From Adineta vaga (taxonomy: Eukaryota; Animalia; Rotifera), in the NCBI GenBank assembly GCA_021613535.1, contig CP075494.1, positions 10,664,001 through 10,728,000 of the forward strand: 64,000 nucleotides of DNA. The letters run 5' to 3'. The first letter of the stretch is position 1, and each line of letters starts with the position of its first letter. A model generated the notes under the pieces. The model saw only the letters and a program-made list of their open reading frames with translations. It ran no database searches and had not been told where the DNA came from. The translations under genes were made by a program, and so were the position numbers. Shown here one piece after another: positions 5,564-13,738 of the stretch.

Positions 5564-6280
5564 TGGTTGGATAGCTCGTAGAGAAGAGGAAGAAGAAAAA
5601 GCAAGAGAAACTATTCAACCTACATATCGATATATTCTGTAAAGAGAATATAACAAAAAAAACGCATCAGAGAAACTTCAATTCGATTTGATCTTCTTTC
5701 GTCATTGTTGTTTATCTTCAAAAATAATACGATCATTTTATGTCATAACAAAAACATGTTCTAATAATCAAATATTAACCAACAGCATAAAAATATGTTC
5801 GAAAATTATTTTATTCTATAAATTATCTATAAAAATAATCACTGACATACGTGATATCGTTTATAATATTTGAATCAAATAAAATGTCTCCTATTCAAAT
5901 AGAATAAATTCTTCATGAGAATTTAATTTTACATATGATCATTTCGCTGGTTGTTTAAATTTTTGGATCTCACTCGAGAACGAAAATCGTACCATACGCA
6001 ATCATTTGAAAGGTTTCATTTAGTCTACAAGATGTCCTTAACAAATCTTTATTTTTTTACTGTGAGTAATTCAATTCATATACCTCCATATTTTGATGAT
6101 AGATAAATGAATAATACAATTAATCTGTCTTCTCACTGTTTATACAAATAACCAGAGCTATCTGAAAGAAAAACGAATGATATATTTATATCATTTCGGT
6201 TAATACACAGAACAATTCGAATTGTTTTCTCGTTCATATTATTTCAGATACAAAAAAGTGCTTTCTTCATCTAATATAGA

Positions 6281-6579
6281 ATGGCATTAAAATCAGGAGA
6301 GGAATTTCCAAATTTTACTGTAAAAATAACCGTTGGTGACTATCAGTTACATGAATGGCTTCATGGTCAGTACGTAAAAATTTCGTCTTTTGTTCTTATC
6401 AAACTAGGTTATTTATTTTTAGGCGAGGAATTTTATTTTCTCATCCAGCTGATTATACACCAGTATGTACAACGAAATTGGCTCGTGCAGCAAAACTTGC
6501 ACCTGAACTTGCTAATCGAAATACAAAATGAATTGTTTTATCATGTGATTCAGTTGATCTTCATCATGAATGGATAAAA
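6281..6579 (+). pseudogene. PRDX6: Truncated 1-Cys peroxiredoxin (Prdx6) pseudogene
   Basis: Exon 1 is MALKSGEEFPNFTVKITVGDYQLHEWLHG. Exon 2 (from 6423) is RGILFSHPADYTPVCTTKLARAAKLAPELANRNTK*IVLSCDSVDLHHEWIK. It has an in-frame TGA, PVCTTE changed to PVCTTK, and no downstream exons are visible. Confidence 0.88.
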
Positions 6580-6612
6580 GTAGATTGTACATTCGTCTTC
6601 TATTTTAAAATA

Positions 6613-6667
6613 TGAGGGTCTGGATGGATGGGTGTAAGTAATTTTTTGTCAAATATCCACACCCACC
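6613..6667. repeat. Short hairpin element with telomere-like arms
   Basis: TGAGGG TCTGGA TGGATGGGTGT ... ATCCACACCCACC. Confidence 0.55.
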
Positions 6668-7136
6668 TTTTGAACTATATTAAGTATGATCTTTTACTTT
6701 TTATCATGCATACGCTTCTTTATTCTTTTGGAATTGTTTTACCCGTCCGCCACGGATCTCAGTATAAACTACACCTATAATAAAAAAAAAGAAAGTTCTG
6801 AACAACATCTGTCACCATTCTGTTAGATGTTTATTAACCGGTTCCGTATTTTTCTTAGCTTTCTTCTTTTTCATTTAGTTTATTGTATCATAAAAATAGC
6901 TTCACACGATGGTGATATGCATCAGAAATTAAGAGCAAAGGAGAGAAAGAAGAAAAAAATTGTTAACCTACTTTTCTTAGCTGAGTGAGTTTTCTGTATA
7001 ATAATGAAACTGAAAGAAATTTACCATCTAGTAGATTGGAATTTACTTTTTGTAGAAAAAGAAGACGCGGTGCTCTTAGTGTGTGCTACACATTTTCATT
7101 ATACCAGAAACACATCCTCGATACAGTACTGATATA

Positions 7137-10100
7137 ATGTTTTCTCTGAAAAACTACCTCTGTACTCTGAATCTTTTTGGAGCTCCTGCTGGTGCAGAGC
7201 CAGAAAGTGACCATCAGCAACGCAATAACCTGATAAGCACTCGCGTCTATCTCTTTCTTCTGTTTACTATACTCGTCACTCTTATCGTCACTATGTCGCT
7301 GATAGAGCAGACTACCCGTATCACCATTGAAAATCCCACTCGAAGCCAGTTTGAATCTTTACCCAACGCAATATGTCCGTGTTCGCGCATCTCTATATCC
7401 TATGGTGAGTTCGTTTCAGCCCAGCCCTCCTTTCATCAAGTGTGTTCGAGCGATTTTGTATCTAATCGATGGGTCTCATCACTTTATTCCGGCATCAATT
7501 CAACATATTTTCTCCCAATCGATATTCGATCATCGGGCTATGCACTGTTTCAAACACTAGCAAGTTTCTGCCGGCTTTCACAAGCAAACGTAAACCAAAG
7601 TCTCTCACTCTTGAGCTCTACCTCTTTCATGAGCTCTTTGATTATTCCCGAGTCCATCTTTCAGTTGCAAGTTCAAGACTTTAGTAATCAGTTTCAACTT
7701 ATGGCACCTAATAAGTTACAAACGCAAATACAACTTGTCGGTAATTTGACCATGCGCAATAAAATCATAAATGGACTGGGAACAAGTACTTTTCTGTCGG
7801 GTACTATTGGAGATGTAATGACGATTTTCAATATATACATTGAAAGTAATGAAACTTGGTGTACCTGTATGGAAACTACCACTTGCGCAGGACTCTATGG
7901 TATTTATGCGGAGTTCGACTTTGACACGCTGGGAGTCAACGATTTCACGGCAATTATGACCATACCGGGGCTCAGGTCGGGCTGTATGCCAGTCGATTCA
8001 AGTCGCCAGTCATCTCTCGAATGTTTTTTCAACCAGACGTGCATTAATACAATTATCCATTATCTAGCCACACCAGACACTAATTTCACTGCCATGACTT
8101 CGTTGCCATCGAGTCGTTTTGGTGTGACGTCTACCGTTGATTCAATTGTCAGTCAACTGATGGTAGAAAGATGGGGATTCAGTATGTCCTACGATAAGTA
8201 TTTCGCTGAATGTGCTCCTTCATCATGCACATATTTGACAACTACACGAAACGATTTTTTGTATCTGCTAACTACGCTCATCGGTTTGCTTGGAGGACTA
8301 TGTACGGGACTAGCTATTGTTGTACCACTCGCCATTCGTTTCATCCGACGGCAACCGACAACAAATGCTCCTGAAATAGTGCCGCGCGTTCCATGTGAGT
8401 ATATTTTTGCAAGTTCGCGTTGATATGAATGAATATAAGGTTATTTTAGAGTTTGAATCTGATTATACATTTGTAGATCGTAGAAAAAAGTGGCATTTCA
8501 TTTGAGATTTACAACTGAGATCTTTCGAAAAGCTTGACAGTCCATTTTCGAACACTTTTCAAGGGGTTCCTGCACGACTCGATGGATCTACTTAGATAGA
8601 GAATACCGAATCTGTAGTTCTTTAAAAAAATAGCTAAAGACGCGTCGAATGGTATAAAAAAGTCGAAAAGGATTTCTTCCCACTTTTTGATGTTTCCCAT
8701 TGGCAAGTAGCGAACAATGGCCTGATTTTCCAGGAACTTATTAAAAGTGATTCAAAAAACAACTATTTGCAATATTTTTTTACGGATAATGGACTATTTC
8801 AGTCAATGATGTGTGCAAAATTTGCGATCAAAATTCGAAAATCCGATCCTGCTGCAAATCTTGTAGTTTTATTGAAAAAATTGCGTGAAAATTCGATATT
8901 GCTGGAACACTGCTCTGAGAGATTGAATTCTTTTCAGCTTCTCCTTACCTCATTGAGGCCTACTTATGACCACAAAATGGACTTAAAAGAGCTTAGATAT
9001 ATGGAAAGGTACATTCACAATTGTATACTTCACAAAAGCAGGTGGGAACATAGAAAGTCTGATACAAAAATATTTGACAAGCGTGTTTCCTATCTCATTA
9101 ATACACAATGGTACTGCCCGAAAGCATATCCCCGAAATCAACGTCGTATTATCGTGGTTAAATTCCTAATCGTATAGTTATCTATAATAAAAGTTACATA
9201 CATCTCGTCACCTATTTATTCTGTAATATTAAAGCTTAAAAGACCTTTATTCGCAAATAGGATGAGAAAAACAAGTTTGCATTTTTGTGAAGTATTAACA
9301 TTCCAATCAGAGATGTCCATCGCGGCTGAGAATGTACCGCTGCCGCGCTGCTCGCATAGTGAAAATTTTTAGCAATTATTGTCTGCAATTAATAACACTC
9401 AATATATCTAGATCGTACTGTTAACTGCATGATCAATTTATGTATGTTTAGTTATTATTTAAGTTCATATCATTTCTGTTAGTTCGTAATACAAAAATCT
9501 TATTCTATCATTTGTGAAATCGATCGAAACTGTTTTTGTCACTCAATTCATCGTCTTTAGTTCAAATTCTAATTAAACTAGATCTATGAAGTTTGAATTC
9601 CAACTATAAAGACTTCGAATAGATCAATGATCAAACAATATTTTTCGATTGTTAATGGAGACTTCATAGCTGTGGAAAATCGAATTGGGATCAAATGCAA
9701 AGTAAACTTATACAAAACAAACAGAGTTTAATATTAATTATTAGACTAATAAAATTAGGCTCAAAGTGTTATTGGAACGCAAAATCCGTAATTTCACATA
9801 TCACCTTTCGAGAAACCGACAAGAATTCGAATTACTCGGTCCCAAATATCTTTACTCAATGTTCATAAAAGAACTCTAGTTTCATAAAACAGATCATACC
9901 TGATCGGAATACTAAGCTTACGAATTTTTGTTCTATAAAATAGCACTGAAAGCAAGCTCGATGGAATCATCAAAAACTATCGATGAATTAACTAGATATA
10001 TATCGAAACTCTAATTAGAAGATAGGAACAAAATTCTGGAAGTTTTTCGGAAATCAATTTTCAAGCTTTTTTGAGATCTCAGCTGTCAGTTCTAGATTAA

Positions 10101-12644
10101 TAGGATGATTCTCTATTCATTCTTGTTTAATTGACCCCTTAGAACTCTAGCCGTTGTATTATATGAATTCTTTTTATTGTTTCACCTTTTTCAGTCATGG
10201 ATCGCTTGTATCAATTAAAAATGCTGCTCAAACGTACTCTTATCGAACTGAATCTTTTCAAAATATATCCAAGCGATGTTCGTCAAATCCGTCATCAACA
10301 CGTTGCTACTTGGCTTTACATAGTTATTCTTTTATCTACCTGTGTCATTCTCACTTGCTATTCATGTATTATCTCGGAAACTTATCATGAAATAGTGAAA
10401 TATCCAACTCAGTCTCAATTCTCCAATCTTCTATCACTCTATCCGGTATCTCTTCAATGTCCATGCTCATCTATCTCAATCCCATATAATACATTTCTCA
10501 ACCTAGAACCACAATATCATCAAGTATGCTCAAGTGATTTCGTTTCTACAGCGTGGCTTGCCTGGTTGAATGAAATAAGTAGCTCCACTGCCAACTATGC
10601 AGATTTCAGAAATAATGGTCCTGCTTATTTCCATATTCTCGCCTTATTATGCAAAGAGGCTATAAAAACTGTTACTAATGCTCTTCAACAATTTCTCCAA
10701 GAGAAATATATTACGGCTCAAGTGGTTTCTCAACAGGTGTTTGCATCACAAATAGCAGCGTTCATTAGCAGCTGGAAAGTGGCGACAATGAATAACTTTC
10801 TCCGACCATTCCAATTGATTTCAGCTATTCAGCAAGGAAATCATCTGGGAGCTACATTTTCGAATGTGCTGTTCAGTATTACTGATTCAAACGAGTTCCA
10901 AGTGGATTCGGTTGAATCGCTCTACAAAAACTGTTCATGTCTACTGTTAAGATCATGTCTTGCGCAGATGCGTATCTATCATCAACCTGCCGGCGAGGAT
11001 TACTACCTTATATTGACCCCTGTGGTGGGCTTAGTGGCTGGATGTTTTCAAGTGGAAGCCTTGTTAACATCAACATTGGACTGTTTCTACCGTAAAAACT
11101 GCCTTGACATAATGTTTCATTTTGTTAAAATGGTAGTTTCGGACACACGAAATATCACTGTTACTTCACTCGATCCAAGTCTAAACGATGTAAGTGAAAC
11201 TATCGAGTCTCTCGTCAAGCGACTCTTTGTCGATAGTTGGTACGATTCGTCCTCGAATAATTCATTTTCCGCCTATTATCAAGCGTGTTCACCACAGTCA
11301 TGCGCTTTCCAGCGCACTGGCCGACGCAGTATCATTACTATCATAGCGACGATCATTGGCATTTTTGGTGGACTGACAACAGGCTTGAAAATTTTACTTT
11401 CCGTTCTCCTTCGTGTATTCGCCAAGGTAAGATCAGATCGATCTTTTCGTAGTCATTTTGGTTCTGCTAAAATTTGGTTTTTCACTTTGTGCAATCAAGA
11501 ACGCTTAGCTAGTCGATTACATACCCTGCTACTCTTAATAACTCTCACGGCACTTTATCTCGCATCCTCGATCACACTTCAAACCCAAACAGAACAAGTC
11601 GCCAAGCCATCTTTTCAAATTTATGAACATCTCCACCTTCTATATCCAGCAACACTGCAATGTTCATGCTCAAAAATATCAATTAAGTACCAATCTTTCA
11701 TGAATTTGACAATCATACGACAACACCAACTGTGCTCGAGCGATTTTGTGTCTGACCAGTGGATTACAACACTACTTTTGCCTAACATTCTATCTACTTA
11801 TTCTCCTTTCGAATTTCGAAAAGTAGCTATTGGTCATTTCCAACTTCTTTCTTTACTATGTCAACTCACACAACAACATCTGAGCGATGCGATTTCCGAT
11901 CTTGTCACTAAGAATTTCGTCGAATCTCAGCTGGTTTTACCTACCGCTTTCAACATGCAAATTCAAGCAGTTATTGACCGATTTCAATTGGCAACAATCA
12001 ACTCGTTTTTGATCACACTTCAAGTTGTTCGTGATATGTTCAATGACAATAAACTTATTTCAATCTTCGAGACGAATTGGAAGTGGATGAACCCAGAATA
12101 TAGCTTTGAATCTTTTTTTGGAGCAGTTATACATACAAAACCAGTCGTCTATGGCACTTGTGATTGTGGCTTGTTCCCACAGTGTGTTCAAGCTGGTATT
12201 GTGTCGAACAACTTGACCATTCCTGGACTCATGGTTGGCTGTTATCCGCTTGAAGCTCTACTTCAGTCAACATTCGAGTGTTTGTATAATACATCGTGTT
12301 TTCATCTACTTCAAACATTAAATGGATCGTTCACACCGTTAGATGCATCCGTTCCAAGTCGATATAAACTTAATTCAAGCGTTGAATTCATTCTTAGCCA
12401 ACTAATGATCGAAGAATGGTTCAGTAATATTTCGTACGAAAACTATTATGCTGAGTGTGCGCCATCCTCTTGCTCCTACTCATATCTCACGCATCGTCCG
12501 GCTGTTGACGTTCTTACCATTATTCTCGGACTCTATGGTGGTTTAGTTATCATTATGAATGTTGTTGTTTTGATACTACTCGCTTTATGGAAACAAATCA
12601 TCGACTATCGACGATTAACTCGAATTCAAACCATCAATAATTGA
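7137..12644 (+). CDS. ~1235-aa membrane protein of three tandem ~400-aa modules (TM - Cys-rich ectodomain - TM); two exons, 7137-8394 and 10195-12644
   Basis: Donor CCAT|GTGAGT (8395) and acceptor TTTTTCAG|TC ATG (10194) join ORFs 7083-8423 and 10197-12644 in frame (T+TC = Phe). Each module has C(P/S)CS..ISI.Y..F, HQ(V/L)CSSDFVS..W, GL..GC....LEC-like, Y...C.P.SC and G(L/I)xGGL motifs. Confidence 0.85.
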
Positions 12645-12991
12645 GTAGCAGACTCCAAAATGAGACAAGATTTTGTTGCCTTGTTTTGCCTCGTTTCATA
12701 AAATTGCAAGGCTAAAAATCTTTCTATTTCTGTCATGTTAAAACATAGAGAAAATCAGTAAACGAGAGATAACAGTCATATGAAATATTTTTTAGATAAA
12801 CGATTGATTATTGCATGTTGAAAAATAATCATCAGCTGAATTTTGGTTGGTGTTACGGAACTAACCATATTAAAAGTATTAGCCTTTTTTTTACCACGTC
12901 ACATGCATTTGAAGTTTTCTTCGATGATATTCTTCTAAACTAAAAACTCAGCCATCTGAAAAAGCTGTTGAGTATTTGTGGATAAAGTTTC

Positions 12992-13154
12992 GGGGTGAAT
13001 GTAGGTGAGAATGTTGGTGTAGATGAAGAAAAGAGATCCTTACACCGCTCACCCACACAACAGTCTCAATCTCACTCACAATGCTCCCTCTTGAGGGTGT
13101 GAGTAAGGGTGTGGATGTGTGTCAAGAAGATATACACACACACACACCACACCC
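12992..13154. repeat. Tandem hairpin elements with telomere-like arms
   Basis: TGAGGG TGTGAG TAAGGG TGTGGA TGTGTG TCAAGAAGATATA CACACA...CCACACCC (13092-13154), preceded by a more degenerate G-arm/C-arm pair at 12992-13080. Confidence 0.6.
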
Positions 13155-13378
13155 GCAAGATCTATCAGAGCAACACTCTTACATACGATAGATGGGAAAT
13201 ACCATTAAGAGTAAAATCAATCAGTGGCGGCACATTTAATAAATATTTCGAATCCATGTTTTCCCTTTCTTCTATTGGATTAACTTTTCATGGCTTAATC
13301 ATCATCATTTCAATTCTATATATATATATATATATATGATACAGAAATAGACAAAAGAAAGAAGCTATACGTGTTATT

Positions 13379-13738
13379 ATGCCTCTTATCTATCATCTTG
13401 CACCTTCTTCACGATGGTTTTCATGGCCAGAAGAAAAATCTTATTTACCACCAGACTATGAGCAAGAAGGTTTTATTCATTGTACATCAGGTGATGAATT
13501 AATGCTTAAAGTAGCTAATCGATTTTATCGAAATGTTTCTGGTGATTATGTTCTACTTGTTCTCGATACAACAAAACTAAAGAATCCTCCATCCGAAGTC
13601 AAATGGGAACCAGCATCGGATTTCGATGCACTTTTCCCACATATCTATGGTGCTATTGATCGTAATGCAGTTGTTGAAGTTCGACAATTTCAACGAACAG
13701 ATGATGGAACATTTGTTGGATGGACAAATTCAAATTAG
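13379..13738 (+). CDS. DUF952 family protein (119 aa, intronless)
   Basis: Typical DUF952 motifs: IYHL, EGFIHCT, VANRFY, VKWE, FPHIYGAI..AVVEV. Confidence 0.9.
   Translation: MPLIYHLAPSSRWFSWPEEKSYLPPDYEQEGFIHCTSGDELMLKVANRFYRNVSGDYVLLVLDTTKLKNPPSEVKWEPASDFDALFPHIYGAIDRNAVVEVRQFQRTDDGTFVGWTNSN

Follow-up and report, generated by a model that had tools for sequence, protein, structure and literature searches.

A six-pass, three-module membrane protein gene of Adineta vaga and a large rotifer family of candidate pseudo-trimeric surface sensors

Gene structure at the locus

We analyzed a stretch of 64,000 nucleotides from the bdelloid rotifer Adineta vaga (chromosome C5, positions 10,664,001 to 10,728,000), referred to here as the window, whose plus strand carries a gene for a predicted membrane protein composed of three homologous modules. 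Its coding part comprises two large open reading frames (ORFs) in the ORF listing of the window, one spanning 7083–8423 with its first ATG at 7137, and a second one, ORF2, spanning 10197–12644. According to the original prediction, the two are spliced in frame across an 1800-bp intron, yielding one protein of ~1235 amino acids (aa) with three homologous modules. The splice arithmetic bears out the predicted product. The donor GTGAGT begins at 8395 (...CCA T/GTGAGT at 8394/8395) and the acceptor AG occupies 10193–10194 (TTTTTCAG/TC ATG at 10194/10195). The frames join in a split phenylalanine codon made of base 8394 (T) and bases 10195–10196 (TC), and the coding parts of 1258 and 2447 nt add up to 1235 codons. 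The elements of the gene, with transmembrane (TM) helices numbered along the chain, are the following:

7137–8394, plus strand: exon 1, with start codon, cytoplasmic L-N-L-F helix, TM1, Cys-rich ectodomain 1, TM2 (IGLLGGL) and basic tail, ending in phase 1 (ORF, orthologue alignment, TM/Cys map)
8395–10194, plus strand: 1800-bp intron, GTGAGT...TTTTTCAG, of unusual length within the family (sequence; homologous phase-1 introns)
10195–11441, plus strand: first part of exon 2, module 2, with TM3, ectodomain 2 and TM4 carrying IGIFGGL (ORF, BLASTP, alignment, TM/Cys map, tree)
11442–12644, plus strand: second part of exon 2, module 3, with TM5, ectodomain 3, TM6 carrying LGLYGGL, short C-terminal tail and stop (ORF, BLASTP, alignment, TM/Cys map, tree)

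Judged from sequence, the comparative evidence for the junction is strong. The A. ricciae orthologue P0004 is one continuous protein of 1233 aa that is collinear with exon 1 at 45% identity end to end, its Met 1 falling on ATG 7137. It is likewise collinear with ORF2 at 42% identity, with residue 425 aligned to ORF2 residue 2 and no residues missing at the seam, and its third module is 46% identical to that of the window. The P0004 gene contains a single 52-bp intron, in phase 1, which interrupts the counterpart of the split Phe codon. In A. vaga, seven paralogous loci show a donor at this position and, ~50–90 bp further on, an ORF of ~800 aa; the donor reads T/GTAAGT or C/GTAAGT in six of the seven and G/GTAAAT at locus L008. 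A relative, L001, with an exon 1 protein 79% identical to ours, retains the GTGAGT donor and continues with at least 1.2 kb of non-coding DNA. At three loci, three module-sized ORFs are spaced 0.4–1.7 kb apart. Because only the first of these ORFs has a start Met near its N-terminus, long introns are spliced in this family. We thus consider it likely that the locus gives rise to one spliced, three-module mRNA.

Several observations weigh against a single spliced gene. No contig bridging 8394/10195 was found, and no sequencing run containing the sequence is recorded as RNA. Two runs guessed to be RNA yielded six short contigs (7061–7300, 7966–8118, 8680–8944, 11503–11653, 11684–11834 and 12212–12434), of which the 265-nt contig 8680–8944 lies inside the intron. 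This contig could represent unspliced RNA, an intronic transcript or DNA carry-over. Furthermore, existing gene calls divide the locus into products of 264 and 815 aa, the ATG of ORF2 is located 2 nt downstream of the acceptor, and the intron measures 1.8 kb as compared to ~50–90 bp in most paralogues. ORF2 could accordingly be a separate, possibly trans-spliced gene: a one-module protein would run to the stop at 8421–8423, and a two-module protein would start from ATG 10197, perhaps after spliced-leader trans-splicing at AG 10193–10194, with the two products possibly assembling in a 1 + 2 manner. We regard this arrangement as improbable, given that the GTGAGT donor sits at the exact position and phase seen in the family and is kept in the 79%-identical relative, that the orthologue is continuous, and that the second and third ORFs of paralogues with gaps of 1.3–1.7 kb between modules are start-less. 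Moreover, the existing calls are poor guides, because the 264-aa model begins at an internal Met and misses TM1. For the proposed in-frame splicing, the canonical sites, the frames and the introns of orthologue and paralogues therefore agree with the prediction, and the RNA check left it without a bridging contig. In practical terms, current annotation cuts this gene, and probably many of its paralogues, into one- and two-module pieces and should be corrected.

Three homologous modules and a rotifer-wide family

The three modules are readily recognized as homologues. BLASTP of exon 1 against each half of ORF2 gave E values of 6e-49 and 8e-48 at 29–31% identity, and a three-way alignment contains 62 invariant columns. 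The TM map shows six strongly hydrophobic segments, two per module, consistent with a six-pass protein. Each module consists of TM1, a loop of ~320 aa with 12 conserved Cys, and TM2 with a G-x-x-G-G-L motif (IGLLGGL, IGIFGGL and LGLYGGL in modules 1 to 3). All 15 N-x-S/T sequons fall within the loops, and the inter-module and terminal cytoplasmic segments have net charges of +3 to +6, with linkers of at most ~45 aa. Since these basic segments fit the positive-inside rule, the loops should be located outside the cell. The maps of TM segments, Cys residues and sequons thus confirm the module plan that had been read from the sequence, including its short basic linkers. A Pfam scan of both exon products, which were searched separately in all database searches, returned no family at E ≤ 1.

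At E ≤ 0.001, a profile built from the three modules retrieved 3725 proteins, each representing a cluster at 50% identity, and 1373 of these matched at E ≤ 1e-30. In the A. vaga genome, a first look revealed 1139 candidate module matches, and the 100 that were scored all had E ≤ 1e-85; many of the genomic matches are arranged in tandem groups near chromosome ends. All homologues bearing species names are from rotifers (Adineta, Rotaria), with no match seen from other groups, and feature searches of the ESM Atlas with the whole module and with the ectodomain returned rotifer clusters only. We found no description of the three-module family in the literature, and it is not among the expanded A. 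vaga families listed by Arkhipova et al., 2013 (PMC3846280). By these searches, the gene belongs to a very large family that is rotifer-only so far, apparently undescribed and without a Pfam domain, in line with the earlier statement that no known family could be assigned, neither Pfam nor the PDB sequences offering a relative. Bdelloid rotifers appear to spend several hundred genes on an unnamed type of membrane protein that lacks a Pfam domain and a solved relative.

The family signature comprises L-N-L-F, T-R at the start of TM1, C-x-C...H-Q-x-C-S-S-x-F, 12 Cys, C-x-P-x-x-C-x-Y and G-x-x-G-G-L in TM2, and is carried by the window gene; in the window's subfamily, the module alignment shows that N-L-F has been lost from the third module. 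Among 189 modules, conservation is highest in L-N-L-F (N12, 94%; F14, 86%), in the T35-R36 pair at the cytoplasmic end of TM1, in the Cys scaffold and in TM2 (G386, 85%; G387, 94%; L388; K/R at 393, 67%; P397, 69%); N12, F14, T35, R36, G386 and G387 are all conserved at 85–94%. The membrane-proximal parts are conserved, and the most variable stretch comprises ectodomain residues ~211–270. Comparing exon 1 with its 79%-identical relative gave a ratio of nonsynonymous to synonymous substitution rates (dN/dS) of 0.28, so that selection on this exon is purifying, if fairly relaxed. Approximately 20 long homologues (P0062–P0169, 1500–2244 aa; for example P0064, P0078, P0119 and P0169) carry a C-terminal extension after the three modules. 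Pfam scans of five such extensions identified FG-GAP repeats in four, one of which additionally contains NHL repeats, and several of seven long homologues checked for hydropathy have an extra hydrophobic segment after TM6. Either these proteins are genuine receptor-like fusions, or adjacent gene models have been merged.

We counted modules in the 150 best-scoring of the 3725 matches, applying no length limit. Summed module coverage reached a maximum of 2.94, with about three modules in 78 proteins and about two in 70. Because the bit score rises with module number, proteins of four or more modules would top this list, and none is there. All 13 sampled paralogous loci of A. vaga contain three modules, with a short intron after module 1 in nine of them, no intron in one (a single 1260-aa ORF), and long introns separating three exons in the remaining three. 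Wherever a sampled locus had an 800-aa two-module ORF (nine loci), an ORF for module 1 was located immediately upstream, and the proteins with about two modules therefore look like partial calls. P0210, annotated as a one-module protein of 411 aa, maps to the closest paralogue in the genome (locus L016, G000:C3:16073000-16076700), where module 1 is intact and is followed by a gap or short intron of ~58 bp, a frameshifted module 2, and module 3. This locus looks like a decaying three-module copy, and one-module proteins in the database are doubtful as real one-module genes, P0210 being the only one checked. In a tree of 189 modules, 143 of 171 were nearest to a module occupying the same position in a different protein. 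The window's subfamily divides in this tree into a first-module, a second-module and a third-module clade, each comprising 11 modules and supported at 100%; modules 2 and 3 of the window gene belong to the latter two, respectively. Six proteins have modules that are each other's nearest relatives, which reflects either concerted evolution or renewed triplication; three modules would be kept in both cases. A related observation concerns the three-exon locus L012 (G000:C5:340000-347000), whose modules are ~75% identical to each other and whose exons 2 and 3 share an identical N-terminal stretch, indicating recent duplication or gene conversion between modules. Based on locus and protein sequences, three modules per chain is very probably the rule of this family. 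The single-chain design is borne out by the collinear P0004, and of the predicted count of one or three modules per gene, three holds as norm and upper limit; the sole one-module case checked traces back to a decayed three-module locus.

The gene differs in base composition from its surroundings. Exons 1 and 2 have GC contents of 0.43 and 0.39, respectively, as compared to 0.28–0.33 in flanks and intron, and the GC content at third codon positions (GC3) is 0.35–0.40, versus 0.15–0.18 in the window's other long ORFs and 0.08–0.32 in 13 paralogous loci. The GC contrast with the flanks, together with the low intron number, had been taken to suggest that the gene is mobile or foreign. The elevated GC relative to the flanks is real, and a foreign or mobile origin is nevertheless extremely improbable: the named homologues are exclusively rotifer proteins, the position of the spliceosomal intron is conserved over paralogues and species, exon 1 of the A. 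ricciae orthologue has an ordinary GC3 (0.21), and the locus has no copies elsewhere in the genome. The raised GC3 does not indicate transfer.

The long intron and the downstream neighbour have features of their own:

8496–8570, plus strand: left arm of an imperfect inverted repeat in the intron (RNA duplex energy)
10025–10098, plus strand: right arm of the intron inverted repeat (RNA duplex energy)

The two arms, ~70 nt each and ~100 nt inward of donor and acceptor, can form a duplex of -52 kcal/mol, as compared to -20 +/- 5 in control windows. They could represent decayed transposon ends or a stem drawing the splice sites together. Genome-wide, the intron occurs once, except for a GC-rich 46-bp piece (9308–9353) with five other genomic copies, which rules out a high-copy transposon. 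Among the contigs of a DNA run from 2013, one omits that piece, suggesting a small mobile or polymorphic element, and one lacks 270 bp of intron sequence (9621–9890), probably an allelic indel. An Rfam scan of 6000–13500 gave only two sub-threshold microRNA-like rows. Just downstream of the gene, a 119-aa ORF (13379–13738, plus strand) contains a DUF952 domain (E 1e-21).

Predicted structure and fold searches

An AlphaFold2 model of a single module (69 homologues) reached a predicted local distance difference test (pLDDT) score of 89.8 and a predicted template modelling (pTM) score of 0.75. Following the chain, the model shows a short N-terminal L-N-L-F helix, TM1 leading straight into a beta-strand, a conserved Cys-rich part, two antiparallel helices of 32–37 residues, a variable beta region, a second conserved part, and a beta-strand that runs straight into TM2. 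For the full-length arrangement, we relied on a contiguous homologue rather than on the window protein: the model of the natural three-module protein P0008 (1194 aa, 61 sequences) had a pLDDT of 86.1 and a pTM of 0.78. From the definition of pTM, we infer that three well-folded but mutually unplaced 400-aa domains would score ~0.4, and by this comparison the modules appear to be confidently placed on each other. Topology likewise favours a compact body, as every module is held in the membrane at its two ends and is connected to the next by a linker of at most ~45 aa. Two points weigh against this picture. Compactness was judged from the global pTM score, any pseudo-threefold symmetry being a prediction, and homologous repeats can mislead AlphaFold2 on inter-module packing. 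A two-chain prediction of modules 1 and 2, run without supplied alignments or controls, scored 0.07, which speaks neither for nor against the packing. Considering the models as a whole, we find a compact pseudo-trimer reasonably probable, and the beads-on-a-string outcome, which had been named as the alternative, is disfavoured by the P0008 score.

Searches with these models pointed to no known fold. A profile search of PDB sequences returned designed helical proteins and no channel. In Foldseek searches of the PDB with the single-module model, all rows had E ≥ 2.2, with ASIC chains at E 3.8–9 (template modelling score, TM-score, ~0.1) and P2X7 at E 7.7 (TM-score 0.08). VIA-align of the same model against 48,161 PDB representatives found nothing past a two-helix hairpin, with ASIC absent from the top rows, and a single-module search of the BFVD viral models gave no fold match. 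For the three-module model, Foldseek of the PDB and VIA-align similarly revealed nothing significant or nothing past the two-helix hairpin. In a shape search of the ESM Atlas, the neighbours were rotifer clusters, and the nearest non-rotifer shapes were ERGIC/Erv and Wzz, with TM-scores of 0.30–0.33. Given these searches, carried out with whole-module and three-module models, the predicted ectodomain fold is probably new.

Proposed role and comparison with known systems

Our best reading, which we hold with modest preference, is that the gene encodes a member of a family of pseudo-trimeric surface sensors, a 1235-aa, six-pass, disulfide-rich protein that is predicted to be N-glycosylated. In such a sensor, the three modules would lie next to each other and form a single compact pseudo-trimer, with both ends of every module anchored in the membrane. 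The variable distal part of the ectodomain (residues ~210–270) would bind external ligands, and the conserved membrane-proximal parts, together with the six-helix bundle, would pass the signal across the membrane. The strict limit of three modules suggests that a threefold functional unit is written into one chain; to our knowledge, such a unit is otherwise known among cell-surface proteins only from engineered concatemers of trimeric channels. The idea of a receptor repertoire fits the conserved juxtamembrane parts, the variable distal surface, the tandem arrays and the at most trace signal in the presumed RNA runs, and the family most likely represents a diversified set of environmental or non-self sensors. 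For the putative sensor or receptor role, we see about an even chance. It counts against the role that Pfam recognized no signalling domain in the cytoplasmic parts, which are very small.

The same lack of a cytoplasmic signalling domain means that the membrane bundle must carry any signal, which can be turned into an argument for a ligand-gated ion channel. The protein would then be a fused, asymmetric pseudo-heterotrimer whose central pore is lined by the TM2 helices with their G-x-x-G-G-L face, a naturally occurring analogue of ASIC, P2X and PAC trimers in an unrelated fold. In the models, two helices enclose a disulfide-rich ectodomain with beta-strands directly joined to TM1 and TM2, and the whole is compact (pTM 0.78). 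Further support comes from the module number, which never exceeds three, from the conserved small-residue face of TM2 with K/R at 393 in 67% of modules, and from the lineage-specific expansion, as seen in ionotropic chemoreceptors, whose families typically show large expansions of this kind. However, the helices are very hydrophobic, no conserved polar ring was seen in the span, and G-x-x-G-type motifs are also ordinary helix-packing motifs. We therefore rate an ion channel as a possible but unlikely function. Somewhat more doubtful still is the broader proposal of a new ionotropic receptor superfamily, in which several hundred genes for single-chain pseudo-heterotrimeric channels with an unseen ectodomain fold would form the main chemosensory or non-self repertoire of bdelloids. 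At the other extreme, the protein might be a passive surface-coat or adhesion glycoprotein that neither signals nor forms a threefold unit, its three modules being a historical accident. Such a role would suit an ectodomain that is disulfide-rich, variable and predicted to be glycosylated, as well as the FG-GAP and NHL repeats of some long homologues, which are typical of adhesion and recognition proteins. It sits poorly with a three-module ceiling that is strict across thousands of diverged members, three being kept even in the six self-similar proteins, with the strong conservation of cytoplasmic and membrane-helix motifs in every module, and with the high global model confidence, and we consider it quite unlikely. 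Should the family consist of sensors or channels, it would constitute a new receptor class, probably a major one in the sensing of chemicals, microbes or fungal pathogens.

The original prediction had likened the modules to subunits of the trimeric DEG/ENaC/ASIC, P2X and PAC (TMEM206) channels. Like these, the rotifer modules have TM1, a large ectodomain predicted to be disulfide-bonded and glycosylated, and TM2, with one beta-strand following TM1 and another preceding TM2, and three such units would make one functional body. In contrast to ASIC, P2X and PAC, the rotifer ectodomain contains a long antiparallel helical hairpin and a different beta region, the three units reside in one chain, and the family has its own motifs, L-N-L-F before TM1 and G-x-x-G-G-L in TM2. 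The protein did not match the Pfam profiles of DEG/ENaC/ASIC (ASC, PF00858), P2X (PF00864) or PAC/TMEM206. Likewise, the palm, thumb, finger and knuckle of the ASIC ectodomain were not recovered by Foldseek or VIA-align, and neither was the P2X ectodomain fold nor the beta-sandwich ectodomain of PAC. The pre-TM1 segments contain L-N-L-F and no His-Gly motif, and TM2 has G-x-x-G-G-L in place of the G/S-x-S belt of DEG/ENaC/ASIC. Two membrane helices around a Cys-rich ectodomain are indeed present, an arrangement that is common to several unrelated families and hence not diagnostic. The resemblance to trimeric two-TM channels is thus one of plan only, and the suggested kinship reduces to a generic two-helix membrane hairpin in Pfam, PDB sequence and fold searches. 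ERGIC/Erv41-Erv46, which had also been put forward for comparison, and the Wzz-type polysaccharide co-polymerases similarly place two membrane helices around one large lumenal or periplasmic domain. Both differ from the rotifer module in fold, with TM-scores of only 0.30–0.33, and show no sequence match.

With respect to the number of repeats, a parallel is offered by the mitochondrial carrier family (SLC25), in which one chain comprises three homologous two-helix repeats that form a pseudo-threefold six-helix bundle. The rotifer protein shares the three homologous two-helix repeats in one chain and the six helices. Unlike it, SLC25 carriers reside in the inner mitochondrial membrane and have repeats of ~100 aa without ectodomains, whereas each rotifer repeat bears a 320-aa extracellular domain. 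There was no Pfam match to the Mito_carr repeat signature (PF00153), and the likeness is architectural only. The four-repeat Nav/Cav channels and the two-pore channels provide a precedent for subunits of an oligomeric channel becoming fused in one chain, with the repeats free to diverge. Nav/Cav channels are pseudo-tetramers of 6-TM repeats, and Foldseek rows to Nav/Cav and two-pore channels were non-significant, with E ≥ 0.3 and a TM-score of 0.05. If the rotifer proteins are sensors or channels, they would represent a natural subunit fusion that lets the individual positions diverge, as occurred when sodium and calcium channels evolved from potassium channels.

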